A stretch of 64,000 nt of DNA from Tubulanus polymorphus (taxonomy: Eukaryota > Animalia > Nemertea). The stretch spans positions 17,657,807 through 17,721,806 of the forward strand of contig NC_134031.1 of assembly GCF_964204645.1 (NCBI RefSeq), read 5' to 3'. Under the pieces are notes generated by a model, which was not told the origin of the DNA, ran no database searches, and worked only from the letters and a program-made list of their open reading frames with translations. Positions within the stretch are counted from its first letter, which is position 1, and each line of letters opens with the position of its first letter. This document shows, piece after piece, positions 43,101 to 63,280 of this stretch. Both the position numbers and the translations under genes were made by a program.

Positions 43101-46100
43101 AATGAAGTGTCTCGTATAGATCGTCAACTGGTTCGACGAACAGACATAAATGTTCCACGCGGCTAGTTGATGAGCCCCGCAAAAATGTACCATATGTCAT
43201 AAACATGGGCAACAAACTGATCCGCATGTAGTGTAAAATTGAGAATAACAAATTCTGCCACCATATATCTGCGCCTAAGAATAGATCTGGTTCGGTCAGA
43301 TACGATTATGCGAATCTCAGTTCGTAAGCCAGCAGAATAAACAACTATCCAAGCCAGGCAGGCATCTTTAAGCCTAGCGCACATCGACACTGCGATTGGA
43401 GACAACTAGTTGCAAGGCAGTTTTCGGCGCATGAGAGGAACTGGCTGGATACGATCAGTTCCTTGGATGTGTCGATGTGAGCGAGCTTACGATTGGTAAG
43501 CGTCGATCTATCTCCAGTTCCAGCCAGTTGCCCATGTTCTACTTTTGAGCAACTGGTTGTACTCAATCGCAGTCATATCCGTCGATGTGCGCGCTCTGGA
43601 TCTCGACGATCGACACGCGCCATGCAGTTGCTGCAACTGACCGGTTGTAACTAGATTTCGACGTGCGCGGGGTAATCGTTCGGTAGCAACTAGTTGTCTC
43701 CAATCGCAGTGTCGATGTGCGCTAGGCTTTAGTTCCTTCGTTGTACTATGTTTGTCTAAAACAACCCGAGCAAAAATTTTAGTTTTATCGTTCGAAACGT
43801 TATTAAGCACCGCTTTCTTCTTAAAGTGTCGCTAGCTGGTTCCGACGCGCAAATCCGCTACATCGTCATTATTTACGCGAAGTTCGCCTCTTCGCCGGTT
43901 TATCGTCGAAATGAAGCTTACGATGCCGCGACATCGTACCCGACTGTCCGAAAGACATTTGACAAATGTCGCACCGATACGGCCGCACGCCGAGATGCGA
44001 GTTCATGTGATCGTGCAAATGCGAACTGTAAAGAAACCGACGGCCGCAAATTTCGCAGCCGAATTTCCGTTGCATCGAGTATATCGGATTTGGACCGATA
44101 ATACGCCGCGAATCCTCCGCACTGGTCACCGAACGTCCATTTCCTGTAACAAGTCAAACAACCTTATTATACGTGATACCACAAAGACGTTTTCAGTTCA
44201 TCTCACTTATTGAAAACAGATCTCGGTTTAAGTTTTGGCGTCGATGTATTGAGCATGCTACACTTATTAATAGACCGAAAAAAAAAATCAAAATTTCCAC
44301 CAATCGCAAGAAGTTCATTTTCAAATCATGATCGGTCTTTAAAATGTCTCCTACGATGACGCGACATCGTACCGGACTGTCCGAACCACATTTCGCAGAT
44401 ATCGCATTGATACGGCCGCACGCCCAAATGCGAATTCATGTGATCGCGCAAATTCGAACTGTAACGAAATCGGTGGCCGCAAATTTCGCAGCCGAATTTA
44501 CGTTCCATCGAATATATCGGATTAGGAGCGATATCGCGACGTGAATCTTCAGCGGCGCTGCTCGACGGTCGTCCAATTCCTGTAACAAGCCAAAGTGAAC
44601 AACCTTATTATATTCGAAAGACGAAATTCGAAAAATGTCACACCTTTCAAGCTCCCTGCACTAGTTTTATTAGAGTTTTAAGGTTGTTTTTTTTAAATCA
44701 ATTATATCTCATGTTTGAAACAGTATATTTTTGTATAGAGTTCAATGTCGTCGCGATGTGTGTCAAAATGTCTCCTCTTAAATATTGCACTTATACACCT
44801 AGATACAAAACCAAATAATTACCGTATCTAGTTTTGTCACGAAATTGGCAGCCGCAAATTTCACAGCCAGCCTTCTGTTTGCAATGAATAAATGGGATTA
44901 AGGCGGATGTCTTATCATCCAATCACTGCAATAAGGCTAAGGATACAACTTCCCCTAGTTTATGGTATATTCATGGGGCAGATGGTAAAAATGTGTAATC
45001 GTGTCACGGACAAGACCTCCTTATAGCGAACGATATACATAAATTGATCGTAATCGATTAAATCAACAAAGATCAGTTAAAAAACGCTAACATTTTATTG
45101 AATTTTATAGAAAAGATCGTTATTCCTCGACGCATTCTTCCAAGTCGGATTTTGCCTCCAGTTTGTAAATTGTTTGAAATTTCATCCACGATATCTTTTT
45201 ACTGAAAATTACATCGCAACGTCGACATCAATTAAATTCAAACTATTCAATCAAAGTAGCACCTAGAAGGCACCGTTCAAATAAACTAGATGCGTCCTTT
45301 ATATCCGTGTTGGTATAAATGACAGGTTCAACTGTTATTTCTTTCTCACATTCTCCCAAAATGTAATCGCCTTAAGAGTTTGCGAAATGTTTGAACCGGT
45401 ATCCTCGATATTTCTTTTTTGTTTAAAGTAACACCGCGACATCGATAATAACTATACAATCAGCGCAGCACGCAGAGCGTTTAATAAAACTATACAATCA
45501 GCGCAGCACGCAGAGCGTTTAAAAAACTAGGCCGTGTTCCTTGCGTCGGTGCTGGTATAAATGACTGGTTTGACTAAACGTTCGACTGCACACCGTACAC
45601 GCGTACGGCCGCAAGCCGAGATGCATCGATAGATGATTACGCAATCCCGTACGACGATGAAAGTGCTTGCCGCAGATCTGACAGCCGTGCGGTCTCTTCT
45701 TAGCCAAAACAGCAGCAGCAGCAGCCGTAGCAGGGTTCACGAATATGTACCCTGCAAGGAAACGAGACTCTTGATGAGTACATTACAGTTGATTGCCGTT
45801 TGTACCGGTTGTTGGGATTTTATTTTCAGGAAGAGGGACATTGACGAATGTGGCGCCATCTATATGCTCAAGTGTTCGATCAAGTTACATCCGAAAGAGA
45901 ACGAACTAAAACTGATAGGAATGTTTTTTTCTTTCGGTTTCTCCGCAGCCAAACGAGTTACTTTAGGAAATGCAATTCCAGTCGATGGTCCTTCCGTTTG
46001 TGCCGATAAAGCGTGCTCGTTTGCGAATACGATTTGCCGCACAATTCGCAACGATGCAAACGCAAGCCTAAATGCATCGACAGGTGATTCTGCAAACCGG

Positions 46101-49100
46101 CGCGACGATGAAACCTCTGGCCGCAGATCGTGCACGCGTGTCGACGCCGCGGGTCTTCGTGCTCGGCGAGCAGCGCCGGCCGGCCGCGCTTTTTACCGAA
46201 CGGCTGGAAATTGTCGAACACGTCGAGAATATCTTGACCTAGAAATAGTCAAAGTTGAATACATCTTATCCACCGATAACTCGAAATACAATATTCTTAA
46301 TTAGAAAACATTCCTCAAGTGGATAGTTTAGTGTCTTACTATGACTCGGCACTTAAAACATTCGCTACACGTATATATCTATTCCGTCAACAAAATTAAC
46401 TCCGCGTCATTTGTCAAATTAGTTAAATCGTGAATTTTCGGAGTCGTATGTTATAAAAGTAACGTTTAGAAAATCAGTTTCACCTTCTGGTAAAACGGAT
46501 AAAATCTTTATAACTATTAACTCAAAATACGGGCTTTCAGGTCGACATTCTCTAGACTCCATAAATTATGCAGATGCCATTTCCTAAAGTTTACCTAAAC
46601 GCGTAAATTACAGCAACGACCAGAATATGAGAGACATTTTCTAATCTTTTTATTTATAGAATCTCAGATGACAAAAAATGAAACAAAATACAACGAAACG
46701 ACCGACACCTAAAAAACCAACGGACGCCGCGATCTTCACGAGTTACGCCGATGGGCAGCGGCGCGGACGCTTCATCCGTCGAAAAACTCTCCGCATACAA
46801 AATAAAACCAAAGACGAAAAATCTGCCAAACGGTCCCTCAATGTTTATCGATGAACGGTGCGCCGATGTCGATAAAGCGTGCCCGGCTGACTGAACCGTT
46901 TCGCGCATATATCGCACTGGTAGTTCTTCAAGCCGATGTGGATCAACAGGTGGCGCTTCAGGTCGCTGCTCTGGCGGAATTTCTTACAGCAAATGCTGCA
47001 CTGGTGTTGCTTCGAGTCGAAGTGCGTCGCCATGTGCCGCGTCGCGTTCGTTTTCCGTACCGTCTTGTGGCAAATCGAGCAGACGATGTACGTCACCTGC
47101 GTGTAGAATCGCAGCAGTTTGCCTCCTGCAACGATCAGAAGAAAAATTTCGATGATTACAAGATACATCCGATCATCCGATTCTCTTGACCACCGAAAAA
47201 AATCATCATCATCATCGTCATCATCATCATCATTCTTATCACCATCACACACGGCAAACACCAACACCAACTCCTCGGATACAAAAATCAACCCTAGATA
47301 CGTAAAACAACCACAACCGGGAGGGATCGAGGGAAAGTAGAAAATCCCGAAGAAAGTCGTTTACTAAAACCGTGACCCGATCCGTACGTGCAGGTTGAAA
47401 CCCTAGTTATACGCGAAAACGCGACTGACTTCTTATCACCCGAGAATGACGTTCTTACGGATACTTAACGATCGCCATGGCAACAACAACTAAGTCGAAG
47501 CTAGTGTATAATACGCCGCGAGTTTTTTCCGTTCGTTAATCCTTTCGCCGCTCTAATAATAATCTGATGCTGTATTCCAGATTCTCACGCGGCTTTCACT
47601 AATATCCGTACGGTATCGCGAACTGTCACCGCTAAAAATTCACTTATTCGGTTTGTTTTTTTTTTTTTAATCTACGAATGAGACGCGCGTGGGATACGAT
47701 TGTTTACTATTCGACGCACGCACTGAAAATTCAAATTCATTTCCAGCAGGAACAAAAACAAGAAAATCAAAACTACTGCATAATAATAAATATGTGTTCC
47801 TCGTATCGGGGATAAAAATTGTACGAGGCGCGATTCTATAAACGATGTTGAGAATCGAACCAGGGAATTCAAATCCATAATTCGACCCACAGGCTCAAGA
47901 CGTTTTCTCCTCCAAATCGATGGTCGATTTCTAATGTAATATTCCAAATTTTTTCAACGGCGTTTCATCGAACCCGATAACACTAAAACGACCCGCGTCC
48001 GCGGCCTGCGTCCGGTTTGTTGCAATTTTTATCCGCCGATACGATCGAGGTTCAGATGATAATGACGAAAACGCATGATTTTTCACCATGACAAATCATC
48101 ACTATTAAATCAGCAGAGAACGATATATAACGATTTGTCGATCGAACGATCAGCTATCAAATACTCACCTTCCCGCGCGCACACGTAAAACAGAGAGATC
48201 GAAACATTTCCCATTAAACTGAGATTAAGACTTCCGAGATAGGATAGTGTGAGCGCCATCAAACATACAGCGTTCTTACTCGCGATAACTAATTGTAAAC
48301 TGGTGATTATTATAAAAATATTTGTCTAATGCTTAAGTTTTTCCTCCAGTTTATTCATCACACAGTAGGAGTAATCACGTATGTAAGTTAATATCTTGAT
48401 AGCTGATGGTTCGCTTAAAAAAGGGTCTACGACAGCAATATTTGCGCTTTATCGAAAATACCAGCTCGGTGAAATCGCATTAATGAAAATACCACGTCAA
48501 TTAAGTCTTAGTTCCCGAGATGCGAATCAATTTTGGATTTCGATTTTCTTTTAGATACCGAACAGATATTGCTTTCTGATAGACCGCTATACGGCTCTTG
48601 TACGCTTATCCAGAATCAGACAAAATGATATTTAATAGAATTACTTTCTTTCGATCATTCGAGCAAAATATGCAATATCAGAAGATTCGCGCTTGTTCCG
48701 ACCATAAGATTGATTCTCATGGAATGGATGCATTTTCAATTATCTGATAGGCGTACACCAGACCATATCGTACAGATTCCAGAACAACCTTAAGATCAGA
48801 TTTCAATCCCACTGAGTGTCATGTCATTTACAATTTCAGCTCCATGGAATTCCATCAATGGTCTCAGCTGTGTGAAACATTCTTACGGTAACAAACTTCT
48901 GCGCAATGTTTAAAGATTAGACTTTCCACTGCACTCATCGAACAAACTCATTTTAAGTGGATATGGCCCTAGTATTTTGAAACTCCAAACATGGTTCCCA
49001 CAGTAGTATGAATTCAAAATTCCCAAGTTTTTCCCAAGTATTTCATGGGTGATTTTTCAATTTTCCCAAATGGAAATGAACACATCGTCATTCAACAGTC

Positions 49101-51709
49101 TATATTTTACTGGTGACTGGTTGATAAAGGTGATTTTGAAGTGAAACTGCTGAAGAAAGTTGCCCTTGGCAAATGCAATGTATGAAATGTAATGAATTTC
49201 CCAAATATTTCCCTGATTTGAGGAAAATTTTTCAAATTCCCAATTATTTCCAAACCGGGAATTATTATTTCAAAATTCCCAAATTTTTCCCAATTTCCCT
49301 GTTCTGTGGGGACCATGTCCAAATCCAATGGATACGCATTTTAAAGACCCCCTCATAGATTCCATTGCGTAAAACTGTCACTATTTCATACTGGACAAAA
49401 ATAAGAAAATCTGCTTGTTCTGAAATCTGTATTTAATAATGAAAGTAAAGGATGAAAATTCGAAACCTACCGGCTTGATTAGGTGGTGGTTGAATACCGG
49501 ACGACGTGGAAGGCATAGGATTATTGGCGTGAGGTTGTCTCGGACGTCTGGCGCTGGTTTGTTTCGGTCGTTTCGGTGCGGTGTATTGTCTCGGCGTACG
49601 CTGCGTCATCGCTGGATTATACAGAGCGGCATTCTGCATCATCTGCTCCGAATATTGCTGCTGCTGTTGCTGCATCTGATGTTGTTGCTGCTGTTGCAGC
49701 AGCTGCCCCGTTTCGTCGTACATGTAATTGTTGTAATCGGCGCCCTCGTCTTCCTCGTCGTCGTCGCTGAGACTGATCACCTCCGGTTTCACGTGAACGC
49801 TGCCGACCGACGCCGCTAGCATCTGTTGATTATCGTACTGCGACAGGTAAAGTCCGGAATTCGGGTCGACGTCCGACATCGCGTAGCCGCCGCTGCTGTG
49901 ACTACCCGAATTCGACGGCACGCGACCCTGGAAGCTCAGCGATGACACGACGTTCTCCGCGTCAATGAGATTTTGATTTTGTTGAGACGTAATCGTTGCC
50001 GACGCTCGTCGACGTTTACGCTTCGAATGCAATTGTTGGTGAGGGAATGACTGACGAGGTGTTTTCGGCACCGCAGACGTTAATTGTTCGTCGTACGCGT
50101 TTGATAAATCACCACCAGGTGGCGCCTGGTTGTCGTGTTCGCCATCGCCGTGTTCGGCCACGGGCATTGTCAGATCGTTTTCATTATTTTCGCCGACGTT
50201 CGGTTCGTCCTGTTCGAACGCGTTATCGTCGTGTTCGGATAAATCGGCACCGGCAGCGAACTCCGACTCCTGCAGAGCTTTAGTATCGCTGTCGCTGAAC
50301 GCGGAGACGCTCGTCTCCATTTCCTGGTGGTAGAGTTCGTGTGTCGGGTCGCTGAGACGACGTTTTAACAGCGCCCGTTCGTGATTATTAATCTCCGGTT
50401 CGGATTTCACATTCCGTCGTAACGAACGCCCTGAATCAGAATGAAACATGAGTTAACACTTTCAAGAATATTTCTGGGATTAAAATATAAAAACCTATTA
50501 ATTAATACATTTCTATGAATCACACATTGATGATGAAATGGCAATGGCATTTCCAAATTTTCTGAGTTTTGGCAAAAATTTGTCATATTCCCTGAATTTT
50601 CCCCCACTTTTTATGTTGGGGCACAAAATTTGAAAAATGTCTCTCTTTACGAACGCACAAACTACAACTGATTCGTATCTCATGAAACACATATTGATAA
50701 AGCCTGGCCAATAGCATCATATGAATCCTCCAAGTTTGTCGATACTTTTTTTTGGACAAAATATGTCAAAGTATTCATTTTTCGACCTTTCCCCAATATA
50801 TTCTAGATTTGTCTGATCTGCGTTGTTTCCCTAATTTTGTTCATGCTTTACCACACAAAATTCCCTGAGGTTTTAATCTCGCAAATCCCCAAATATTTTT
50901 TTGACATTTTATTTTCTATTTCTATATAAGCAGGTTATACATTCAGAGTGAAGCGTCAAATTCATCGGCTCTTTTACTTTTTCAACATTAATGTTTTTCT
51001 ATCCATGACCTGTTTCAATAAAAAACTTTACGTGAAATGAAACGTTCTTACCGGGTGAATGTCTGGCACGTCGATCCTGCCATTCTAACCACGTCGGTTC
51101 ATCTACCTCGACGACTATATCGGCTATCACATCCAGGCGACTTTTCAAACATTCTTTCAAGTCAGCCTCATTCACTTGGAATGGTATGTCTGTAAGAAAT
51201 TAAATTTTAGAGATGCAAAAAATCTAAATCGTAGATTAAAACTAATCATCAGGGCCCGGTTTCACAAAAAAGTTTAAGCTTAAATCGGTTAAGTTTGAAT
51301 TGTTGTCCTCATTGAAAACATGAAGTAACCAATGGCAATTACACCAAATATTTGAGTTTAACTTTTTTTGTGAAACTGGGCCCATGTCTATTTGCAACAA
51401 AAACGAGCATTCATTGTTTTTTCATTATCAGGTAGATTTAATTTTAGTATTTTCACAAGTTGATTAAAATGATAGTGAAACTGAAGCGGAATACTCTGCT
51501 TCATAAAGAATAGAATTCGTAAACTGGCTTGTATTCTAGGGAGATCATCAACAACCAGGAAGTAAAATGTAACGAGCCAGTTTACAAGCCTCTGTTTGTG
51601 ATCTTTCACTTTAAAATCCAAAAAATGATGCTCGTTTTAAAACATTTTTTGACTAATAAAAGACAATTAACGAGTCAAATGGTTAAGAAAACTTACCAAG
51701 AAGCATCAT
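21846..51709 (-). CDS. Gene A: zinc-finger transcription factor locus with constant 5' exons and an array of >30 alternative 3'-terminal C2H2 exons (lola/mod(mdg4)-like layout, no BTB)
   Basis: The constant part is 1111 nt (370 codons + 1) and ends CAAGCCG|gtaggt; every intact downstream cassette starts with a phase-1 AG acceptor and ends in its own stop. Confidence 0.85.
22779..23080 (-). CDS. Alternative terminal ZnF exon 2, 2 fingers
   Basis: tttttag|GC GTT; [26 protein letters not shown]. Confidence 0.85.
23365..23618 (-). CDS. Alternative terminal ZnF exon 3, 2 fingers (absent from the ORF track)
   Basis: tttgcag|GC GGC; [51 protein letters not shown]; TAG. Confidence 0.85.
24084..24313 (-). 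CDS. Alternative terminal ZnF exon 4, 2 fingers
   Basis: tttgcag|AT AAG; [26 protein letters not shown]. Confidence 0.85.
24638..24861 (-). CDS. Alternative terminal ZnF exon 5, C2H2 + C2HC
   Basis: tttcag|AA GTG; [25 protein letters not shown]. Confidence 0.85.
25162..25412 (-). CDS. Alternative terminal ZnF exon 6, 2 fingers (absent from the ORF track)
   Basis: ctttcag|GC CAA; [50 protein letters not shown]; TGA. Confidence 0.85.
25546..25874. repeat. 110 bp tandem repeat x3
   Basis: Units begin atgtcacagacatcg at 25546, 25656 and 25766 and are nearly identical. Confidence 0.9.
25890..26161 (-). CDS. Alternative terminal ZnF exon 7, 2 fingers
   Basis: ttttcag|AC ATT; [25 protein letters not shown]. 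Confidence 0.85.
26995..27272 (-). CDS. Alternative terminal ZnF exon 8, 2 fingers
   Basis: ctttcag|AA TAC; [26 protein letters not shown]. Confidence 0.85.
27590..27815. mobile_element. Interspersed repeat; second copy at ~31875-32170
   Basis: Shared 'cgcgctaagatcc.atcc', 'cttaagaac', 'ttggatctt' and 'tcatgtgatgcatacatcgc.gttcat' blocks. Confidence 0.55.
27890..28116 (-). CDS. Alternative terminal ZnF exon 9, 2 fingers
   Basis: ttttcag|GC GGC; [26 protein letters not shown]. Confidence 0.85.
28268..28524 (-). CDS. Alternative terminal ZnF exon 10, 2 fingers
   Basis: ttttcag|GG GTC; [26 protein letters not shown]. Confidence 0.85.
28902..29113 (-). CDS. Alternative terminal ZnF exon 11, 2 fingers
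   Basis: ttttcag|AA GGG; CRYNC..HEQVH..CVLC..HMRLSH. Confidence 0.8.
29200..29541 (-). pseudogene. 5'-truncated copy of the cassette at 36657-36910 (finger 2 plus downstream flank), no acceptor
   Basis: Near-identical to 36453-36790; the insertion is flanked by an 18 bp direct repeat atttatatacatatttag (29164-29181, 29540-29557). Confidence 0.85.
29603..29823 (-). CDS. Degenerate alternative terminal exon: open frame, Cys pairs retained, His ligands mostly lost
   Basis: ttttcag|GC AGA; [31 protein letters not shown]. Confidence 0.55.
30324..30553 (-). CDS. Alternative terminal ZnF exon 12, 2 fingers
   Basis: ttttcag|GT AGC; [33 protein letters not shown]. Confidence 0.85.
30790..30916 (-). 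pseudogene. Decayed duplicate of ZnF exon 12
   Basis: cttccag acceptor, early TAG, finger 1 deleted; remnant [24 protein letters not shown]. Confidence 0.75.
31379..31740 (-). CDS. Alternative terminal ZnF exon 13, 2 fingers
   Basis: ttttcag|CG ACG; [33 protein letters not shown]. Confidence 0.85.
32286..32562. repeat. 30 bp minisatellite x9 (catatacatagacc(a/g)gtcgcagctgcact type)
   Basis: Direct tandem units with few substitutions and no spacers. Confidence 0.95.
32584..32873 (-). CDS. Alternative terminal ZnF exon 14, 2 fingers
   Basis: ttttcag|GA CGC; [33 protein letters not shown]. Confidence 0.85.
33045..33328 (-). CDS. Alternative terminal ZnF exon 15, 2 fingers
   Basis: ttttcag|AC TGC; [36 protein letters not shown]. 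Confidence 0.85.
33671..33883. mobile_element. MITE with ~27 bp TIR (ATACCTTGTTTCTCATT); related copies at ~3631-3925, ~17873-17952 and ~54990-55075
   Basis: Inverted termini and shared internal 'gacc...agttatagaaat.aac.gattacaaa'. Confidence 0.7.
34175..34407 (-). CDS. Alternative terminal ZnF exon 16, 2 fingers (absent from the ORF track)
   Basis: ttttcag|GA CGA; [64 protein letters not shown]. Confidence 0.85.
35076..35338 (-). CDS. Alternative terminal ZnF exon 17, 2 fingers
   Basis: ttttcag|GA CAA; [31 protein letters not shown]. Confidence 0.85.
35571..35798 (-). pseudogene. Decayed cassette of the GFLPI subfamily
   Basis: tttctag|AC TAC acceptor like exons 18 and 19; in-frame stops; remnants YRCKIC and KGFLPS*. 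Confidence 0.65.
36657..36910 (-). CDS. Alternative terminal ZnF exon 18, 2 fingers
   Basis: ttttcag|AC TAC; [31 protein letters not shown]. Confidence 0.85.
37422..37669 (-). CDS. Alternative terminal ZnF exon 19, 2 fingers
   Basis: tttttag|AC TAC; [31 protein letters not shown]. Confidence 0.85.
38937..39205 (-). CDS. Alternative terminal ZnF exon 20, 2 fingers
   Basis: ttttcag|GC TCG; [26 protein letters not shown]. Confidence 0.85.
39686..39945 (-). CDS. Alternative terminal ZnF exon 21, C2H2 + C2HC
   Basis: ttgtag|GA CAC; [37 protein letters not shown]. Confidence 0.85.
40285..40544 (-). CDS. Alternative terminal ZnF exon 22, 2 fingers
   Basis: gttgcag|GA ACG; [25 protein letters not shown]. 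Confidence 0.85.
40954..41201 (-). CDS. Alternative terminal ZnF exon 23, 2 fingers
   Basis: gttacag|AA ATT; [25 protein letters not shown]. Confidence 0.85.
41393..41649 (-). CDS. Alternative terminal ZnF exon 24, 2 fingers
   Basis: gttacag|GA ATT; [25 protein letters not shown]. Confidence 0.85.
42136..42407 (-). CDS. Alternative terminal ZnF exon 25, 2 fingers
   Basis: ttgtag|GA TAC; [25 protein letters not shown]. Confidence 0.85.
42625..42887 (-). CDS. Alternative terminal ZnF exon 26, 2 fingers
   Basis: gttacag|GA AAT; [25 protein letters not shown]. Confidence 0.85.
43371..43728. mobile_element. PIF/Harbinger (Tourist-like) MITE
   Basis: Perfect 43 bp TIR agcctagcgcacatcgacactgcgattggagacaactagttgc, with TTA on both flanks (43368-43370, 43729-43731). 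Confidence 0.85.
43869..44143 (-). CDS. Alternative terminal ZnF exon 27, 2 fingers
   Basis: gttacag|GA AAT; [25 protein letters not shown]. Confidence 0.85.
44326..44579 (-). CDS. Alternative terminal ZnF exon 28, 2 fingers
   Basis: gttacag|GA ATT; [25 protein letters not shown]. Confidence 0.85.
44760..44925 (-). pseudogene. Decayed cassette of the [10 protein letters not shown] subfamily
   Basis: attgcag acceptor; remnants [26 protein letters not shown] and RRHF, with frameshifts and deletions. Confidence 0.75.
45519..45751 (-). CDS. Alternative terminal ZnF exon 29, 2 fingers
   Basis: cttgcag|GG TAC; [26 protein letters not shown]. Confidence 0.85.
45958..46238 (-). CDS. Alternative terminal ZnF exon 30, 2 fingers
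   Basis: tttctag|GT CAA; [26 protein letters not shown]. Confidence 0.85.
46845..47125 (-). CDS. Alternative terminal ZnF exon 31 (most proximal), 3 fingers
   Basis: gttgcag|GA GGC; CSIC..HMATH, CSICC..HLLIH, CDIC..HRRTVH. Confidence 0.85.
48990..49317. mobile_element. hAT-like MITE
   Basis: catggttcccacag ... ctgtggggaccatg inverted termini; internal 'aaattccc' repeats. Confidence 0.6.
49471..50430 (-). CDS. Gene A constant exon 3: disordered acidic/Q-rich region with basic NLS-like cluster and SUMO-site/SIM-like motif
   Basis: attcag|GG CGT ... CAA GCC G|gtaggt; 960 nt open frame; [24 protein letters not shown], poly-Q. Confidence 0.9.
51052..51189 (-). CDS. Gene A constant exon 2: conserved N-terminal domain of unknown family
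   Basis: cttacag|AC ATA CCA ... TCA CCC G|gtaaga; [45 protein letters not shown]; conserved in genes B and C. Confidence 0.9.
51252..51383. mobile_element. Harbinger-like MITE
   Basis: gggcccggtttcacaaaaaagtt ... aactttttttgtgaaactgggccc inverted termini. Confidence 0.75.
51697..51709 (-). CDS. Gene A start-codon exon (coding part MMLL-; exon ~51737-51697)
   Basis: accATGATGCTTCTTG|gtaagt, phase 1; equivalent MLL exons exist in genes B and C. Confidence 0.75.
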
Positions 51710-51779
51710 GGTAGTGTTTAATACTCATTTAATCAATCTACAACGAAAAACAATTTACATAAATTCGTGAGAAATAAAT

Positions 51780-52450
51780 GACGCCACCTCTCTCTCTACT
51801 ACGAGATGCGTGTAACAAAATGGCGTCGATGATGGCGGTGGGTACGCGGAGGGACGCCAGGATTTTTCGCTCGGATCAACATCAAATTACAGCCACGTTT
51901 AGCGATCAATTTAGAGAATTCGTCGTCCGTCGAACTCTGTACACATTTTTCTAGTTCACGGTGATATTATTTTCGAATAAAGTAAATTTTAAAAGACATT
52001 ACCAGCAGTTTTAATTATGTTAGAGGACGTCACCGCGCCGCGTCAGATTCTTTGTCCTAATCAATTAGTTCGCTCGATTCCCGATGGGGGCAGCACCACT
52101 TTTTCGGGTTCATTCACGATTTCCGCGATTACGAGTGATAACTAAGGGTTTTCGGAGTTCTATCCGTTAGAACTAATGATGATACCGATGATGATGACTT
52201 GTATTGCGATGACGAGTCGAGGGTCCAAGTCTAAAGGGGTTGGAACCCAGAAAGTAATAAATCTTAATTGAATTGCTGGACAAGTTCGGCAATTTCCGTA
52301 TTATATACGGAAATAACCGAATAAAATAAAAGCAAAACAAGCGATAAATCCACAAGAACGATGATAATTTACATGTTTTCTGGAGTGTTTAATTGATTGT
52401 AACCTGGTGGGATCCTTTTCAAGGTTCTGTTTAACCGGTACGATCTCGCA
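51780..52450. promoter_or_regulatory. Putative bidirectional promoter region between head-to-head genes A and B
   Basis: CpG-rich; AAAATGGCG (YY1-like) at ~51817; GGGGCAGCACC motif at 52086; lies between the two start-codon exons. Confidence 0.45.
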
Positions 52451-52822
52451 TTTGCCATGTTTGCCCTCAAAAAGCATAATTTTCTGTCGAAAATGACATC
52501 ATTAGGCCCTAATTTTCTATCAATTCAACCAAATTTAAATCAATCAAGACTCAAGTATTATTCGTTTGTCATTATATTTATATTTATTGAGTGTTGGCAA
52601 TGTAAATCATAATTGCAATATGGGCATGGAACTGTGGCTAATTTGTCATGGTCGAGTTCATTTTAACTCCTCTCTGACTCTAGAGCCCTATCCTCTTTCT
52701 GAATATTAATTCTTTTCTTCAGCCCGTCGTGTCAGAGAGAGAGAATTGAATATATTTATCAATGTTTTGTTTTGTTAAAATATTGCATATTTAATCCTAT
52801 AATGTATAAATGATGTTATGGT

Positions 52823-53017
52823 GGGTAAAATTGCAGATCCGCACCTCTCCGCGTAAACGGTTCAATCAATTACATTAAATATCAATGTTTCAGATTCAAA
52901 ATTCAGTACATTGCCATTAGTTAATTTTAGATATCTTCACTAGAAAGATTTTAGCCTGGATTCTATCATTCAGCAGATTGCGTCAATCACGAGAGGTGCG
53001 GATCTGCACTTTTACCC
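52823..53017. mobile_element. MITE with 27 bp TIR
   Basis: gggtaaaattgcagatccgcacctctc / gagaggtgcggatctgcacttttaccc; tatggt on both flanks (TSD-like). Confidence 0.8.
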
Positions 53018-53131
53018 CTATGGTGCAATTTGAGTTATCCACAATGTCGTAAAATAAATAACGAAATCAAACTGACGCACTTTTCTCTTTTTTCAGATTT
53101 TAGATGATTGATAATCTCACTATAGCTTACG

Positions 53132-55524
53132 ATGCTTTTAGGTAAAAAGACTATTTGTACAATTGAATAAGAGAATATACCTGGGCCTTACGATTAGTTT
53201 TAACGTACAATTAAGATTTTTTACATCTCTAAAATTTAATTCCTTACAGACATACCATTCCAAGTGAATGAGGCTGACTTGAAAGAATGTTTGAAAAGTC
53301 GTCTGGATGTGATAGCCGATATAGTCGTCGAGGTAGATGAACCGACGTGGTTAGAATGGCAGGATCGACGCGCCAGACATTCACCAGGTAAGAATATTGG
53401 GCAATTAGTGATGCTCTGTCAGAGATTGAGTATTTTATCTGAAGCCAGTTCCTGAGTTCTCAGAAAGAAAATGTTAACGATTTATTTTCAATGTTTTGAA
53501 TATATCCAACTGCCTCCGCTAGGTACGGCCCTCAATCTTGATTTGGTTATGGCTACTATTTTTTAGAGTAGCTATTTTCTACTCTTTTTAGAATTAAGAC
53601 CTCAATTACTCCCAAAAATATCGAAATACTCATAAAATTAGAAATAGGCCCTATGTCTAGTTCATTTCCAATTAAAAGTACTAGGCTATTTCTTGTGTGA
53701 AATAACTCCTTTAGAAGCTACTACAATTAAAGATATCTGTAGGTAGGACTATTTTGTACCTGAAAAAGATGACCGATTAGTCAAGTCTAAACTGTGGAAC
53801 TGAGTCTTGCGTCCTTTACTGATATGAGTATAACTGCAAAGAATGGGCCGATGAAGTCGATAGTTAAAATTGCGATGTTTACTTTGAAAGCGTATTTAAT
53901 TCCAGGTTTCATGACTGGAATTGTAAAATCTGAAGAGGGATTAGATTTCAACACGTGCAAAGTATTAGAGCAACACCAGCAGCAGCAGCAGCAGCAATCG
54001 CAAACTGATGAGTTGTGTATCAACACATTTAATGAATCAACAGTTGAATCAGGGATTCTCATTACTGGACAAACATCGGAATCGAATATCTCTAATCAGG
54101 CGCTCGGTCATCAATCTGTTTTAGTTTCCGATTTACAAAACGATCCCGCCACCGATACTGTCAAATCGACAACAACACCGACCCCACCTAGTGACAAATC
54201 TATCAAACATCCGCAGTTGTTTACGAGTCGTCGACTTCGTACGAAACGAAAACGTCGACGCGCGACGACGTCTGCTTCGGTTACTGGCGACAATAACCGT
54301 AATGTTCCTCATTGTAGCGAAAACAATTATCATTTGATGTCGACCGACGGCGCGCATTCTTCTACTCAGATAATCGATCAAAACTATCCACTCTATCATC
54401 AGACAGTGGCGCCACCATCGCGAACTGTGTTCGATCAGCAGCAGGCGTTTCTCATCGGCGGTGGCGTTCAGATCGGTTCCGATTCCGCATTCCCGACCGC
54501 TCAAATGATCGACATGAAACACGAAGTAATCGATCTCAGCGGCGACGATGATGACGACGACGATGATAAAAGTGGAGCTGCTGCCGCTGATGAAGACGAC
54601 GCGAATAAGACGTTCGGTAGTTTCGTTTACGGCGATACCGGCGAACGACAAATGATTCATTTCACCGAACAGCAGCCAGTGTTCAATAACGTCGCGGCGT
54701 TTAACTACGAATGTCGACAACCGATCAAACCACCGAAACCGAAACAGCGTAGATCGATGCCCGCGTTGAAAGCAATGCCATCTTATTCAAATCATCAACA
54801 ACATCAACAACCACAACCTACTCATCAATCAGGTATTTGAATTTTCATTGGGTTTTTAGAAATCTGTGTTACGAAGTTTCAGTAGATCAGAAATCATTCG
54901 ATACAGCGACCAGCCATTCCATCCCAGAGGCATCCCGCGTGTTAATTAATTCATGGATGGTTCGGATGATTGAAGCTGGGCCTGAAGTTTTAAAAAAATC
55001 ATACCTTGTTTCTTTTTAAATTGGCCCAACTGCATTTACATTTATAATCGGTTCATTTCTATGACTATTGGGTTTGTTTGAAATTTTCTTTCAATCGATC
55101 AAACTTCTTTTGATTGAGAAATATGTCTTACATGTGAAAAGTGCAGATATTTTCTGGACTTTAGGGGATTCTGCCCAGGATTAATCTTCTGTTCAGTGAG
55201 AAATCCTTTTTCTTACAACGACGGATGTGTCTTATATTTTCAGCTTCAAATTCAACGACGACGCCGCGGCAGACGCTCACGCTGAAAGTCGGTAAAAAAG
55301 CCGCGCGAAAGTACGAGTGTCGGTTCTGTTCGAAGATGCACACGAGCAATCAGAATCGTATCGTACACGAGCGAATTCACCTCGGCGTTAAACCGTTTCA
55401 GTGTAAGATCTGTTTCCGTCGTTTCAACCAATCGAGCAGCTACAGGCGCCACCTACGTCTCAAACACGGCGTCGAACCGAAAACGGTGAACTCGAAAGAG
55501 ATTTATCAACTCATCATGGCTTAG
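53132..55524 (+). CDS. Gene B: paralogue of gene A with a single two-finger terminal exon; exons 53132-53141, 53250-53387, 53906-54832, 55244-55524 (~451 aa)
   Basis: All introns are phase 1 GT-AG and the total is 1356 nt in frame; exon 2 protein is identical to gene A; CRFC..HERIHLGVKPFQCKIC..HLRLKH; AATAAA at 55645. Confidence 0.88.
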
Positions 55525-56961
55525 CATTGATGTAAATTGACATTTTAAGCAGCTCCATCGACTCAGAAGTCAATCTCTCGTGCGTGGCATCTCATTGTTT
55601 TAATTTACAGGGTCCCTATAACTACTTGATCCCTTAGAAACTTCTAATAAATGGAAAATGCTTTTAAAGACGCTTGAAACTGCATTGATTTGAACAAATT
55701 GGTTAAAACTCCTTCAATTTTGAGAAACGGGTAATTAGAAATTTTTGTCTGGTTTGTAAATCGTTACACTCTTAGGACCAGGATTTTTTTTACCCAATTA
55801 GGCGGTTACTGAATTAGAAGCTGAGTTTGGTTAGTGTAACAAGATCCTGTAGTGATAGTGTAAATGTAACAAATTTGCTTACTGAACCACTGAATTTTAC
55901 TATCAACAGTACAGTTGTCTCACAGTGTAAGAATTGAATTATGTGAATAGAAATCTGGCAAATAAAATTGTGTTTAAACAATAGTTCATGTGTCAATGAA
56001 AAGTCATTGAGTAGCTGGTCTTCATGTTTCAAATTCATTATTGTACCTTCGTTTATTTTCTGCGAGATGAAACTTTTGTCATAAAACGTAAAATGGATAC
56101 GTGTTAAGTAGTGTTTGGTGCTAGTCCGTGCATCTATGTGTGACTGTTATATTTATGATTAAGAAATATTCTATCCAGCTGGTGTCTTAGCAGTTTACTC
56201 GAAACTTTTGTAAAAATTGTGTTCTACAATGTTGTGAATCTTTTTTGGTTTATTTCCTTTATTTTGTACATAGAAGATATGTTTTCTATTTTTGTATATG
56301 CAATATGTACATGTTCACGAAAAAAGCCGTAATTTGTATCAAGCCAAACACTCGGAAGTTAAAACACCTTGGATGATAGATTCGTCTGTGTTGGCCTGAT
56401 TTACCTGAGAATTTGTAGGTCTAAATTTCAAAAACTAAATGTGTTTATGTCAAAGCCAGCATATTATATAAGTGTATATTTTCGTTTAGACATACTCTTA
56501 TTTTTATGTTTTCTGACAACAGTAATGCATGTTAATGAAATTTGAAATAAATTTTTTTTTTAAACTTATAATTAACTAACCTTTATTGTTTTGGTTTTTC
56601 CTGGAAATCGTTTGAAATGTTCATGACTTCAATTTGATCAGACTGATTTCTCCACCACTGAGGGCTGAAAGGTATTGATATTTGATATTCTTTGAAGGGA
56701 TGAGTACTTATGATTATTGCTGTAACCAAACATTATAGGAGTTATTTCCTTAGTTTAAGAAAATTTGCGATTTATTTCTAGATAATGTTATTACTCTCCT
56801 ATCATTACCATAGTTGCGGAGGGTAAAGGTTAGAGTATAGGAAAAGATGAGATATTACTTTATTCTGACAAAAAAATGAGAGAACAATTGGGTATAAAAA
56901 GGTCATACATCATAATGCAGAAAAGATGCCAAATGTACAGGCTTTAAAAATTTCTCCAACC

Positions 56962-57040
56962 GTATGGTGCTGCCACCGTTGTTAAATCGGTGAACTACCG
57001 TGGACAATGGCGAAATTCAAGGAATTTTTTGCGGGTAAGA
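56962..57040 (+). promoter_or_regulatory. Putative gene C promoter and non-coding first exon
   Basis: gtatggtgctgccacc motif, then CAATGGCG and a donor gcgg|gtaaga at ~57034. Confidence 0.5.
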
Positions 57041-57656
57041 AATTCTCAGAAAAAGTATTATTTCTCGACTGAAATCATTTTTCTCTTTTTCGCATGTGTA
57101 TGTGATATTTTGCTCGAGTAACTGGTATGGCTTATTTTGTCTGAAAGTTACCTGTCGCTGCTGTTACCGCTGATATATACGAAAACTTAAGTAAAATGTT
57201 TGACAGTTAGTCTGGCTGCACTACGCTTACCTACGCTTTAGCATTAGGGACTATTCAAACTTAGTAAAACCTAGTCCGTGTTAAGTTTTTGATATCTGCT
57301 AGAGGTAATTAGAACTTAGAATTGCGAATCCCGTTAGGATTAATTGTATTTTTCATATAAAGATAGGTGGCCCTTAGTGCGGCTGTAGGAAGTAGAAAAG
57401 GACCCATTGCAGCAGGCCTGTGATTAATCAAGTGTCATAAATTGTATCAGCCTACTTATTTAACAACAAGTTTTTTTAGCAATTCTAAAAATGTATTGAA
57501 ATTTTTGATTGATTCAGACAAATTCCTGTCTTTATTTATGTTGGGATCACAAGAAATTGGAAGTTTGAAAACCTGTTGGGACCAAATTTCAGATTTTAGT
57601 AAAATTCTTTTAATAGGTTTTCATTGAACGCAGTGGCTCTCATACTGTTGAGGAAA

Positions 57657-60600
57657 ATGTTACTCAGTAAGTATAACGCTCAATGGGAATAGTGCTGCAC
57701 ACATTAGTCCTGTATAATTAAGTGTCGATGAGTCATGTAATTCTAATTCTTTCTAATTGATCAGCCATTCCTTTCCAAGTCGACGACGAAGATTTGAGGG
57801 AATGTTTGAAAAAGCGTCTTGATGTTATTTCCGACATTGTGATCAGTGTTGACGAGCCGATCTGGTTGGAATGGCAGGCCAGACGAAATCAAACCAGTAA
57901 GTATCGGAAGTTATTTCCAATTTTCTTTGGATAAGGGTCTCTATGACTCCTTGATTATTTAAAACTCCTTCTAAACATAAAATGCTTTTAAGGTGCTTGA
58001 AACTCTTTTAATTGGAGCAAAATGCACGAAACTCCTTTAAGACTTCAATTTTGATAGGCCATTAGAAATTTTAGTCTAGTTTGTAGTTGTATAGTAAGCA
58101 ACCCCTAAATCGCTAAATTTCAGACCAGGATTGTTTTTACCAAATTAAAAACGGAGTTTTGTAGTGTTAAGGAAAAAAAAATTGCTTACAAAACCACCAA
58201 ATCAACAGTTAACTGAGATAAACAGTGGCGATTTAGGAGGAGTCTACAGTAATTGGGATATGAAAGTGATGCAGACACTTCCTCATAAATTTTCTCCTTT
58301 AAAACTCCTTGAAAACTTCTCATATCCAGGAATAACCGATCAGCAGGGACCCTGTCTATCAAAAATGATGATAATTGATTTCTTAAATTAAAATTTTCTT
58401 TCTAGGGAACGATGATTTCACGGGCGAGGAAAACGGACTCGTTATAGACGAGAAAAATAGCAACGGCGAATGTCGAAAACGACGAAAATACGCGAAAAAG
58501 AAAAAATCGCGAAAAACGTTAAACGATTCGGCTGTAACGACGGCTGAACCTCGCGACGCCGATACCGATTTACCGAACGTTTATTCCGAATCGAACTTAA
58601 AAACCGACTCGAACGCCAGCGGAGAATCGTCATTCCCGAGCCACCATTCGCAAAATAAACGCCGCCGACGTCCGTCTGCCACGGTAACCTCGCCGGCGGC
58701 GACGACGACGGACGAACCGAGTTTATCGGTCGATCGTCCGCTTCTCCGCGACGATTTCACCATGTCGGAAACGCGTTTGAAATCGTACGCGAATTTTTGC
58801 GCTGACGACGACGATGAGGACGACGACGATGACAATTCGGCGTTGATCGCGGCGAACGTTCCCGAGTTAAACGTCGGAGATACGATCGTTGACGTTAAAC
58901 AGGAACCGTCGGTCGCCGCGAGTCTCAGCGACGACGAAAATAGCGATTTTTTATACGAGAATATCGGACAAGAACAGTACATCGGTCAGGAGATCATCGA
59001 AGGTGCTTTACAGCAGTCGCCTATGCCACAGTTATCACCGACCAGCAACAGTATGCATTGGACACAAGCAGGTAGGTTGAGTCTCTGTAGGTTGAATATC
59101 TGTTTGTAGGGTAAATCTCTGTAGGTTGAATCAGTAGGTTGAATATCTGTTTGTAGGTTGAATCCCTGTAGGTTGAATCATTGTTTGTAGGTTGAATCAT
59201 GTTAAGGTTGAATCTCTGTAGGTTGAATATCTGTTTGTAGGGTAAATCTCTGTAGGTTGAATCAGTAGGTTGAATATCTGTAGGTTGAATCTCTGTAGGT
59301 TGAATCATTGTTTGTAGGTTGAATCATTGTAGGTTAAATATCTGTTTGTAGGTTGAATATCTGTAGGTTGAATCAGTAGGTTGAATATCTGTTAGTAGGT
59401 TGAGTCTCTGTTTGTAGGTTGAGTCTCTATAGGTTGAATCACTGTTTGTAAGTTGAATCACTGTAGGTTGAATCACTGTTTGTAGGTTGAATATCTGTTT
59501 GTAGGGTAAATCTCTGTAGGTTGAATCTCTGTAGGTTGAATCATTGTTTGTAGGTTGAGTCTGCGTGTGTAGGTTGAATCTCTGTTTGTAGGTTGAATCT
59601 AAAAATTTATATATGCAGGCTACAGGTTGGCCACTGACCTGGAAAACTATTAAAAAATCAAGGAAAACTTGAGGAATTTACAAATTTTACAAAAACCTGG
59701 AGAACTCAGGGAATATGATTATTGTTATTGACCACATGTTTCTTTATCAATGTAACAATTTAGACATAGAAATTTCGCTGATTTCTCAGATAATTTGTGT
59801 TTAATCGTGTGGAAAAATCAGGGGATTTGAAAATAGGCGGAAAGTGGCCGCACTGATGAAGTATGCACCGTCCAACTTCGATGTGGCTTAAAAGTCAGAT
59901 GCATCTTCACTGCAGAAATATCTGAATTGAACGGCGAATTTGTCGTCTTGTATGCACCAATAGAGTAGACAGTGGGGAGTGTTGACAGCGGAGAATACCT
60001 GTTCACTCTCTCAACCGGCGTTACCGCGAGAGAGCCGCAGTGAAACTCGATCACGCGTGGTGTCAGCTGATAACGTGATCACTAAAGCGCTATTATTCCA
60101 TCTCGTAATCAAATTGTCGCCGATTACGGCGGCTAATTTGCGTGTATGAAAATTAGTTAATTACGTTCACAAATGACTGGTCTCTAGTGTATGTATGTAT
60201 GAATGCTGTATTATCGCGTCGGACTTTGTTTCGCCTGAGAATTCATTACGATCGTTTACGACCCTATTTATCGAGTATTGTTTTCATCATTAGCTCGTAT
60301 CGGCGTTCATAAATCAGTGAGAGGTTTTCAGGGGCGGTCTCGGGCCCGTTTCGTCATGCAGAAATTGTTGAAAAATTCGATGCTCGTCCTATTCTCGGAA
60401 TCTGCATCTCTTAGGATTAATTGTTCGAAAATATATTTACGACGCGGGTGGGACCCCGCTAGTGGTTGCTTTAGCCTTTAATTCCGTCTGGGCCTGGCTT
60501 TCCGATTTTCCTAGATCCGTTCCTGGCTTTGAATTGAGATCGGTCGAAGTCTTCGGGAGTTCGCCTGAAACTTCTGAACTGGTTTTCTGAGGTTTATTCA

Positions 60601-63280
60601 TTTTTCCATCTTCATATCGTTATTTCTTTCTTCCTTGTAGATCTATTCCGTCGTTATCCATCATCCAGATTACGTACATCAAGTATGAAACCTTGATACG
60701 GGATCTGCTATGATAAGACTCCGATGCTAACAGTTCCTATAATTCGTAGTTATTCTGGATGTTTAGAAGAGAAATGATGAGTGGGCTGTTTTACCAGACT
60801 AAGTGCAACATATTGCATCCTTTTTCCCCCCCAGCCGGCATATTTTTGCCGGGGGAAAAGTTTACATGCCTAGCTAATTGACTGCCAGTATACGGACCAA
60901 CTGTTTGCTGTATGTAATGGACGGGTGGAATTCGTTAATTGTCTGTTTACTGATTATGTCGTAAGCTGAAATAATGGCAGCGCTTTGCAGGCTTTTTACG
61001 TCTTTTTTTCCCGGGCATATTTGTTGATAACGATAAAAAGCCCATTTAGGTCTTAATCCTGCCGGGACAAGTAAAGCAGACTTCAATTAGGCTATTTCAA
61101 TTCATATAAGATTAGTGCTTTGGAGGGTTTCTTCAATGGATGAAGTAGCGCACATCCTCTCAAAAATAACTATGAAATGAAATGAGAGTTATGATATATA
61201 TCCAATTACAAAATAAACGCCAAAATTTACAATTGTAATTATTATTTCTAAATGCTAATATGGATGACATAAGTGCACATTGACTCACACAGAATCCCTT
61301 AAATAATGCAAACTAGGTATCAATGTATATAAGCATTATTGTAATGGTTTTAATGGAGTCAAATTACAAATTCTTCGCACTGTTTTGTGCCTTTATACAT
61401 ATTGTACACTGGCATCACGCTGGAAAAGATTTTTTATGTCCGTTATTAGCGTAATTGGGGAAAATCGATGCTTACAACATCATAACAAATAGAAATAATT
61501 TCTTTAAACAGTTCATTGGGAATTTTTTTGTCAAATTGGGAAAAATTAATTAGCTTTGGATTGGGAATATGTCCGGGTTACCGGACATAAGTACGGCCCA
61601 GCGTGATGCCGCCTGCTGTGTACCAGTACAGCTCGGATCTCTTAGTTGATCAAAAGTCAAGCGGCTTCGACGCAGTTTTCTCCACGTCACACGACGCGCA
61701 TATACATCCTCTCTTCGGTGTCATTGATTAGTGATTTGTTCCGATGGCTGCTCCTCTAATGTTTCACTCAATACGCTTCGTCTCACACTTGAATCTGTAA
61801 TGAATGATGATAAAGGGTTTACTTGTGAAACGACGTGGCATTAGATGCAGCGAACGCAGTCAGTCAGCAGACGTGTGTCTGTCGTATAGTAGAGTCAGTA
61901 CACAGTCCACAGCATGATTCATACGACATTTTACTATCAAATTCAGTACGAATCTGACAGGCTATGTAATGGTTTCGATGAATATTTCAATATTCTTTCC
62001 ATCCATAAGTAAGCATTGCTACTCAATTTTATTGACTTCTCCGATTATTTTATTCCGAGCCAGTGATGTATTATGGATCGGTTTGATGCTAAAGATGTAT
62101 ATCACGCTATGAAATGTTTATTTCTTAGGGCTATACGTTTTCATTTTCTCGCATCAAAAATTCGATGAATATCTTTACCTTTGAGGAGAAAAACCGAATG
62201 ATGTGATTTCTATTAAACAAGTTAAAAGAGACTCCATTTCTTTGATGCATACACACCAAGAATTTGAAAATTAGGGTTTTCTGACCATTTTGGCGGAAAA
62301 CCTCTTTTTTTATTCACCTGTTTGTTAAAGAACGTCTCTTTTCTGGAACTTTTTACTCATAGTGTAGTAATTGAAATTGAAATTTATTTTCATTTACGAT
62401 GTTACATTATTGAACGATATAATAAGTATGATTAGACGAAGAAAAATGTAACAGGATAATGGGGCTACACGGAGAGACTGAAACAGTCTATCTAAGCCGT
62501 ATCACCCAGAAGCATCCACACCACATTCATCACACATGCAGTAGTACATCACACATCAGGCATAGTATACCTAGTACTAACTGTTTGTTAAATTTGGTGA
62601 GAAAGCTAGATCATGAGTAAATTCAAACAGTTTCTGTTCATGTCTTACGTATTTGACTGTCTTAATTGATTGGATTCTTTACTGATCAAGTCAGGGAAAA
62701 CAACGTAGATGTCAGGGAATAAATAGTCAGCTAAAAAGCGGGTCCAATATAACCCCGTTAAACGAGCAAGGCAGAAAACCCGTTATCGCTGCTTCGCAGC
62801 TATATTATATTTTCATCATTGATTTTTTCAGAGGATGAAGATCTGCCGACCTCTACGCGACCGCGACGTTGTCGAACATTGTCGTCATCGATGGCGAAAC
62901 TGCGGCCGGCGCGGCGGAGGGTGAACGCCAAACGGTCGCCGCCGCCGCTCCCACCACCACTTCCGTCGAAAGACAAAAACGGTTTCAAACTGGTCTCCGA
63001 GTTCATTTTAGAAAACTCGCACAATAAAATGGAAAAGACGACGCCGCTGTTGTGCGGCGCGAAAATCGTCAAATGCGCGTACTGCGACAAACCGTTCTCG
63101 ACCAATCAGAACAAAGTGATCCACGAACGCATTCACCTCGGCATCAAACCGTACGAGTGTCAAATATGCCATCGATTCTTCACTCACGCCAGTAACTATA
63201 AGCGCCACCTACGAACGATGCACGCCGTCGAAAATAAAATCATCGATTCTACGGAGCATTATCGGTTCATCAAAGATTGA
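57657..63280 (+). CDS. Gene C: third paralogue; exons 57657-57666, 57765-57896, 58406-59071, 62832-63280 (~418 aa)
   Basis: MLLTIPFQVDDEDLRECLKKRLDVISDIVISVDEPIWLEWQARR; all introns are phase 1 and the total is 1257 nt in frame; [26 protein letters not shown]. Confidence 0.85.
59072..59600. repeat. Complex minisatellite of GTAGGTTGAATC(TCT/ATTGTTT) units
   Basis: About 30 variable 13-19 bp units starting exactly at the gene C exon 3 donor. Confidence 0.9.

Follow-up and report, generated by a model that had tools for sequence, protein, structure and literature searches.

N-terminal domains of C2H2 proteins commonly dimerise, and the working and the expansion of large zinc-finger families have repeatedly been shaped by KRAB, SCAN, ZAD, BTB and FiNZ. 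In the Drosophila genes lola, mod(mdg4), fru and ttk, common 5' exons supply the N-terminal BTB/POZ domain as a constant part, which is combined with many different zinc-finger exons. According to a passage in PMC7913770, all Drosophila ZADs homodimerise and heterodimers form only between close homologues. The module we describe here, which opens three neighbouring zinc-finger genes (A, B and C) of the ribbon worm Tubulanus polymorphus, likewise holds a constant N-terminal position, and the BTB-like place in a lola-type architecture that a sequence-only reading of this DNA had given it is upheld. We propose that it is a genuine, undescribed N-terminal module whose role would be protein interaction, most likely self-association, a reading to which we assign a probability of roughly 0.4. 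It would be a further unrelated lineage-specific partner domain, and the first from Nemertea.

The domain exon in genes A, B and C

The window, that is the whole stretch of 64,000 nucleotides of contig NC_134031.1 that was analysed, contains genes A (minus strand) and B (plus strand) arranged head-to-head and gene C (plus strand) downstream (Table 1). Gene B was read exon by exon, and genes A and C through their RefSeq proteins P0015 and P0018, respectively. The domain exon, of 46 codons in A and B and 44 codons in C, is flanked by AG and GT, is in phase 1 at both ends, and translates in all three genes to the IPFQV...WLEWQ.RR peptide. It is preceded by a separate micro-exon of 10-13 nt with a GT donor, which encodes M(M)LL and the first base of the next codon. 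The spliced products start with MLLD in A and B (MMLLD in the RefSeq model of A) and MLLT in C, and the RefSeq proteins confirm this splice for A and C.

Table 1. Positions in the window of the exons and motifs of genes A, B and C
Feature	Position	Strand	Description and evidence
Gene A, micro-exon 1	51697..51709	-	ATG ATG CTT CTT G, then GT donor; M-M-L-L and first base of codon 5; pattern scan; P0015 begins MMLLD
Gene A, domain exon	51052..51189	-	138 nt, phase 1-1; P0015 residues 5-51; top own-genome match
Gene A, exon 3 (ends approximate)	49471..50430	-	Disordered constant region; tblastn of P0015 against the window
Gene A, exon 3 basic motif	49994-50023	-	Motif scan
Gene A, exon 3 psi-K-x-E and acidic tail	49745-49792	-	Motif scan
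Array of ~30 two-finger exons (context)	21888..47000	-	Downstream of the gene A constant part; C2H2 motif scan
Repeat arm 1 (216-nt inverted repeat), carries A domain exon	51045..51260	.	Partner arm 53179-53394, carries B domain exon
Gene B, micro-exon 1	53132..53141	+	ATG CTT TTA G, then GT donor
Gene B, domain exon	53250..53387	+	138 nt, phase 1-1; peptide as in A, 3 synonymous differences
Gene B, exon 3	53906..54832	+	Open constant region; acceptor and donor read in sequence
Gene B, terminal two-finger exon	55244..55524	+	In-phase acceptor; C2H2 matches
Gene C, micro-exon 1	57657..57666	+	ATG TTA CTC A, then GT donor; P0018 begins MLLT
Gene C, domain exon	57765..57896	+	132 nt, phase 1-1
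Gene C, exon 3 (constant region)	58406..59070	+	tblastn of P0018
Gene C, terminal two-finger exon	62828..63280	+	C2H2 scan; tblastn of P0018

The peptides of A and C are 75% identical over 44 residues (BLASTP, E = 3e-21), a resemblance that is, to judge from this alignment, far above chance, and the conserved N-terminal domain of about 45 residues on a phase 1-1 exon is found in the three genes where the sequence-only reading had placed it. That reading had also called it the only strongly conserved non-finger region. Its conservation stands, but its uniqueness is not complete: A and C also share an alignable basic motif, KRKRRR..SAT.TS (BLASTP, E = 5e-4), and the constant regions of 19 of the 27 family proteins contain a SUMO-consensus-like element, psi-K-x-E followed by an acidic tail. 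Exon 3 of gene B is not alignable with that of gene A (BLASTP, E = 0.34).

The domain-exon peptides of A and B are identical as the result of a recent copying event between these otherwise unalignable genes, which involved a tract of 216 nt; its two arms are 94% identical, whereas identity drops to 29-35% beyond the tract. The two genes are therefore not independent witnesses for the domain. We reject an assembly artefact as the source of the identity, since the tracts differ at 13 positions and lie in different genes. Of the 138 exon sites inside the copied tract 3 differ, a smaller share than the 10 of 78 in the co-copied flanks (p = 0.0025).

A family of about 40 genes in one genome

The idea of three paralogues has to be widened: all three genes carry the domain, but the T. 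polymorphus genome holds 42 matches to it, or about 40 genes. The E values in this own-genome search are 4.7e-25 for A and B and 3e-15 for C. With a family profile built from a 42-column alignment, in which C, D, W-x2-W and R are conserved, P0015 (E = 4.4e-14) and P0018 (E = 2.8e-13) are both recovered as family members. The domain match of the annotated members begins within the first 10 residues, and at residue 1 of almost every one, the exceptions to the N-terminal start being P0006, which is an ORF call, P0026, whose model is truncated, and three members in which an insertion follows the MxLL start; a methionine followed by two or three hydrophobic residues opens A, B, C and the other annotated members. 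Its fusion partners are C2H2 fingers and, in one case, a homeodomain; some models show no recognised DNA-binding domain.

When 1.84 billion proteins were searched exhaustively with the profile, 27 matched. Of these, 19 of the 20 that were looked up are T. polymorphus RefSeq proteins, the other being an ORF on a short assembly contig, which bears out the earlier claim of lineage specificity as far as these data extend. No FiNZ protein is among the 27, and a homologue search with the family alignment, which covered short proteins only, gave P0006 as its sole match. On present data the family appears confined to Tubulanus.

The searches for a described domain agree with the earlier statement that it is not BTB, KRAB, SCAN, ZAD or SET. 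Pfam, queried at E up to 10 with the exon peptides and 24 family N-termini, gave no match to BTB/POZ (PF00651), ZAD (PF07776), SCAN (PF02023), the KRAB A-box (PF01352), RRM (PF00076) or any other family except PAH, in one of the 24 members at E = 0.039; with 24 queries, chance alone should give about one match of this strength. A profile search of PDB sequences found no SCAN chain and no significant match, and its best entry, a Mycoplasma superantigen (E = 1.1), was rejected. From these searches we conclude that this is a real, lineage-restricted and undescribed zinc-finger-associated domain.

Within the family C13, D29, W33, W36 and R40 are invariant or near-invariant (the single conserved Cys is missing in three members), and the remainder of the proteins is unalignable. 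Between A and C, pS is 0.89 and pN 0.17, with synonymous sites near saturation; among 14 paralogues clustered on contig C8, pN/pS is 0.28 and the exon is 96.6% identical, whereas the DNA upstream of it is 64.6% identical. Selection on the domain is, as these substitution counts indicate, purifying. The net charge of residues 1-50 lies between -1 and -7 in 27 of 27 proteins, and since every member is acidic we reject the idea that the three helices form an HTH or Myb domain that binds DNA; the domain is probably not DNA-binding, and its charge is counted in support of this.

Fold and proposed role of the module

The AF2 monomer model (pLDDT 89.7) has helices at 7-15, 18-27 and 30-43. With the true N-terminus included the helices remain above 90, and the conserved hydrophobic residues 1-10 form a low-confidence coil (pLDDT 63); leaving this stretch unplaced would be in keeping with a strand that forms only against a partner. 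The Foldseek comparison with the PDB, which had been named as a check, gave 0 matches and hence no described zinc-finger-associated domain; the BFVD structure search gave none below E = 3, and the ESM-Atlas shape search unrelated entries only. VIA-align of two models against 48,161 chains gave best Z scores of 4.2 and 3.7. The best neighbours (Z 2.6-4.2) are the beta-TrCP and Cdc4 D domains, H-NS, the L7/L12 NTD, NblA and docking domains, mostly small oligomerisation modules, but all with Z < 5 and under the tool's own level for a meaningful match; in any case, oligomerisation modules are over-represented among the small helical domains that stand alone in the PDB.

In our reading the exon encodes an autonomously folding, acidic module of about 48 residues. 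It begins with a conserved hydrophobic segment (M-L-L-L/D leading into an alternating V.V.V-type stretch), behind which come three short predicted helices, the third with the invariant W-x2-W-x3-R. At the N-terminus of about 40 genes, this module is what defines them as one transcription-factor family. We propose that it acts as a protein-protein interaction domain, most likely by homo- or heterodimerisation. We infer both that it binds protein and that its partner is another copy of the domain. Self-association would serve these zinc-finger and homeodomain proteins as BTB serves lola, ZAD the insect ZAD-ZnFs and SCAN the vertebrate SCAN-ZnFs, and by analogy with the ZADs the identical domains of A and B could cross-pair.

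A wider version of this model, which we consider doubtful, is that a ribbon-worm lineage made its own small oligomerisation domain de novo and coupled it to alternative zinc-finger and homeodomain exon arrays, independently rebuilding the combinatorial pairing of BTB in lola, with gene conversion keeping the exon uniform so that the genes would cross-pair. The hundreds of pairs imagined in the sequence-only reading would be available only if the two-finger exons were true alternatives. In the RefSeq model of gene A several of these exons are strung together, and they are not modelled as alternatives.

The strongest competitor, which we regard as a serious though lesser possibility, is that the domain recruits a cofactor and does not self-associate: it would dock one common co-repressor or co-activator, as KRAB does TRIM28 and as is suspected for FiNZ, or would be an acidic activation domain. 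The invariance of the surface-type residues W33, W36, R40 and D29 across about 40 paralogues argues for it, and the near-identity of the 14 clustered exons is expected if one partner must fit all; a monomeric, compact three-helix bundle with a common cofactor would explain that near-identity equally well, as for KRAB. In the domain, acidity is combined with bulky aromatics, and its Trp/Phe/Leu-rich third resembles acidic activation domains; its pairing with differing DNA-binding domains (C2H2 fingers, homeodomain) and the psi-K-x-E and acidic motifs fit co-regulator biology, and FiNZ offers a precedent as a short lineage-specific N-terminal ZnF domain suspected of being an effector (PMC10547256). 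However, the identity within the cluster could equally stem from recent duplication or gene conversion, as for A and B, and a conserved hydrophobic N-terminus that the model leaves unplaced is rather what one expects of an oligomer interface.

We think it highly improbable that the domain has no function of its own and is a remnant of a recent duplication or gene conversion, or a translation or stability signal in which the hydrophobic ML- start is an N-acetylation or degron determinant. The copied tract through which A and B hold the domain would agree with this, as would the strikingly conserved M-L-L start, kept even as a separate micro-exon, but the peptide is 75% identical between A and C although their synonymous sites are near saturation, the module is retained in about 40 genes with unalignable linkers, and its AF2 fold is confident. 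Also highly improbable is a divergent copy of a described domain missed by the searches, be it an RRM half, PAH, an HTH/Myb-like three-helix bundle or the beta-TrCP D domain: RRM fragments, with a superficial beta1-alpha1-like resemblance, come first in the ESM-Atlas feature search (0.80), HTH_3 reaches TM 0.59 in the shape search, and PAH and the D domain have the scores given above, but each of these matches is at chance level by its own tool's description, AF2 predicts helices where RRM needs strands, acidity speaks against DNA binding, and neither the PDB profile search nor Foldseek points to such a domain.

If the module self-associates, as we favour, it would explain simply how two-finger isoforms of low specificity could act, and would be a second case of the lola design, arrived at independently. 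Cofactor recruitment would point to an unknown regulatory pathway in spiralians. Under either reading the family alignment suffices to define a new domain model, and the unusually small size of the domain eases its expression, structure solution and testing.

Comparison with known partner domains

With BTB the Tubulanus domain has no relation of sequence or fold: BTB has about 100-120 alpha/beta residues, against 45-50 all-helical ones here, and its oligomerisation is established whereas that of the Tubulanus domain is proposed. The beta-TrCP and Cdc4 D domain (PDB 2p64, 2p63), a small helical dimerisation module, is the top structural neighbour (Z 4.2, rmsd 2.9 over 45 residues), but with 0% sequence identity and a Z of 2.7 with the second model, both Z scores lying under the tool's guideline for helical folds, so that this is a resemblance only. 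ZAD of insects is likewise N-terminal, lineage-expanded and found in clustered C2H2 genes, but has four zinc-binding cysteines, in two pairs, against the one conserved Cys of the Tubulanus domain. SCAN of vertebrates, a selective dimerisation domain, is likewise helical, lineage-restricted and N-terminal in C2H2 proteins; it differs in having about 84 residues and five helices, against three helices in about 40 residues.

KRAB and FiNZ are likewise short, acidic, lineage-specific and N-terminal in fast-expanding ZnF families. FiNZ (Wells et al. 2023, PMC10547256) is encoded by a single exon, like the core of the Tubulanus domain, and is also without similarity to known domains; with 28 residues and an occurrence in cyprinid fish only, it is set apart by description and not by sequence. 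Unlike KRAB and FiNZ, the Tubulanus domain is also joined to a homeodomain, and it heads genes with many putatively alternative finger exons.

Exon structure and extent of the family

The motif IPFQV...WLEWQ.RR of the zinc-finger genes A, B and C had been assigned in the sequence-only reading to a phase 1-1 exon, and three such exons were found, whose translations carry it. Each protein starts in a separate micro-exon 1, which holds the M-L-L codons plus one base of the codon after them and is followed by a GT donor. The splices between this micro-exon and the domain exon are confirmed for genes A and C by RefSeq proteins retrieved in our profile search: P0015 (XP_074655718, LOC141909230), starting MMLLD-IPFQV, and P0018 (XP_074655555, LOC141909088), starting MLLT-IPFQV. 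The gene B protein is absent from the 27 matches of that search; its two exons listed in the table and those at 53906-54832 and 55244-55524, read exon by exon and not as one joined sequence, are all open, with canonical splice sites and phase 1 joins. The RefSeq protein of gene A joins at least 10 two-finger exons in series into a product of 1283 aa, which conflicts with a reading of these as alternative terminal exons.

Features of genes A, B and C (window positions)
Feature	Position	Strand	Remarks
Gene A domain exon	51052-51189	-	138 nt; AG acceptor, GT donor; phase 1 both ends
Gene B domain exon	53250-53387	+	138 nt; AG acceptor, GT donor; phase 1 both ends
Gene C domain exon	57765-57896	+	132 nt; AG acceptor, GT donor; phase 1 both ends
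Gene A micro-exon 1	51697-51709	-	~0.5 kb upstream of domain exon
Gene B micro-exon 1	53132-53141	+	108 nt upstream of domain exon
Gene C micro-exon 1	57657-57666	+	98 nt upstream of domain exon
Two-finger exons (~30)	21888-47000	-	downstream of gene A; C2H2 motif scan
Basic cluster then S-A-T/T-S, gene A	49994-50023	-	kept also in family protein P0012
Basic cluster then S-A-T/T-S, gene B	54244-54279	+	as for A
Basic cluster then S-A-T/T-S, gene C	58657-58683	+	as for A
Psi-K-x-E then acidic, Ser-rich tail, gene A	49745-49792	-	constant region
Psi-K-x-E then acidic, Ser-rich tail, gene B	54514-54561	+	constant region
Psi-K-x-E then acidic, Ser-rich tail, gene C	58894-58941	+	constant region

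Genes A and B lie head-to-head, their first exons ~1.4 kb apart (51697-53141), and a bidirectional promoter between them is possible. A sister pair found in the genome search, at 16169805 (-) and 16175984 (+) of the same contig, has the same divergent layout. Within the intron after exon 3 of gene C, 15/19/34-nt units resembling TGTAGGTTGAATC are densely repeated in tandem (59037-59611).

The domain had been described as common to three paralogues; it is indeed present in all three, whereas the family proved larger, since a six-frame search of the 268-Mb genome with the A peptide gave 42 matches. Among them are two further genes of the IPFQV type, located 1.5 Mb upstream on the contig of A, B and C, scattered single genes, and a cluster of about 20 near-identical copies on another contig (C8:11.41-11.64 Mb), where an M-L-L-L-E-G start runs directly into the helices. 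The consensus of our two family alignments is V.E..LK.CL..HLD.LD.IVI.VDE.TW.RW...R, with C13, D29, W33, W36 and R40 (numbering of the A exon peptide) invariant or nearly so in both. Nearly every annotated member has the domain starting at residue 1. In P0021, and in P0024 and P0025, two isoforms of one gene, inserted residues part the M-x-L-L start from the helices, which suggests that the hydrophobic start is one conserved element and the helical part another. The insertions measure roughly 20-40 residues, and that of P0024/P0025 resembles a partial duplicate of helix 1. The C-terminal partners of the domain are 2 to 23 C2H2 fingers, a homeodomain (P0013) or no recognised DNA-binding domain; the C-terminal parts of P0009, P0022 and P0027 contain no zinc finger and no Pfam domain, and these proteins may either be incompletely modelled or contain other modules not yet described.

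Searches for relatives

We found no evidence that the domain is a known one, and its description as unrecognised stands. The exon peptides have no Pfam match, and 24 family N-termini searched at E up to 10 gave a single PAH match at 0.039, about the chance yield of 24 queries. The family profile reached at best E = 1.1 against all PDB sequences. AlphaFold2 with the family alignment predicts three helices (exon-peptide residues 7-15, 18-27 and 30-43; mean pLDDT 89.7); with the true N-terminus the helices exceed 90 and the conserved hydrophobic first ten residues form a low-confidence coil (pLDDT 63). The Foldseek search proposed earlier for a known relative returned nothing from PDB or BFVD, the best VIA-align scores against 48,161 chains (Z 4.2, beta-TrCP D domain, and 3.7) fall below the tool's noise guideline, and neither the shape nor the feature search of the ESM-Atlas rose above chance level.

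With the family profile, HMMER run exhaustively over 1.84 billion cluster representatives retrieved only 27 proteins with E no higher than 1e-3; against a database of this size the 42-position profile needs roughly 35 bits, and diverged relatives in other nemerteans could escape. Nineteen of the 20 matches looked up are T. polymorphus RefSeq entries named "uncharacterized protein", in keeping, as far as these data reach, with the lineage-specific domain first proposed. The sole exception among these 20 is P0006, a 78-aa ORF call on a 1066-bp contig of assembly GCA_044232415.1; its core shares ~90% identity with the exon peptide of A and B. When 5.8 billion proteins were searched by word index with the longer alignment, a method that sees short proteins only, P0006 alone was again returned.

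Copying and constraint

The exon peptides of A and B are identical, and the likeness of the two genes is a 216-nt inverted repeat (51045-51260 / 53179-53394; 94% identical) with abrupt ends, the adjoining 100 nt on either side being at the random level of 29-35% identity. As the ends are abrupt and the long third exons do not align (BLASTP E = 0.34), the repeat is a recent local copy, made by gene conversion or exon copying between two head-to-head genes that have diverged elsewhere. Inside the repeat, the exon differs at 3 of 138 positions, all synonymous, and the flanks at 10 of 78 (Fisher p = 0.0025); the domain exon has been constrained ever since the copying. Between the domain exons of A and C, pS is 0.89 (near saturation) and pN 0.17. 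Fourteen paralogues of the C8 cluster give a pN/pS of 0.28, and an exon identity of 96.6% against 64.6% in the 150 nt upstream.

Outside the domain, one short stretch alone is common to A and C, the basic motif KRKRRR..SAT.TS (E = 5e-4); it is probably a signal for nuclear localisation that has a phospho-site next to it. The psi-K-x-E motif of the constant regions, by sequence a SUMO-consensus (NDSM-type) site to which A and B add a SIM-like V-I-x-L-S core, recurs in type in 19 of the 27 family proteins, and with its acidic tail may give the common front half a second functional element.

Proposed role and known systems

Judged from its acidity, protein binding would be the natural role of the domain. 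We tentatively propose, with a probability of about 0.4, that it would act as a self-association module, a reading favoured by the broad hydrophobic faces of the helices, by the strictly conserved hydrophobic N-terminal stretch that has no place in the monomer model, by weak structural neighbours that are mostly small oligomerisation modules, and by the dimerisation of most N-terminal domains of C2H2 proteins, such as BTB, ZAD and SCAN. The main alternative, somewhat doubtful in our judgement, is an effector domain of the KRAB or FiNZ kind, or else an acidic activation domain, with one common cofactor as its partner; this would explain equally well why the domain is nearly uniform among paralogues. 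A DNA-binding three-helix domain is unlikely, since residues 1-50 are acidic in every member (net charge -1 to -7).

If the domain self-associates, those of A and B, being identical, could pair with each other, by analogy with the ZADs, which form heterodimers between close homologues only (PMC7913770). Lineage-specific N-terminal domains associated with zinc fingers form a kind already established: FiNZ is described by Wells et al. 2023, who state that dozens of ZNF families are still uncharacterised (PMC10547256). The Tubulanus domain is a new and probably unrelated example of this kind.
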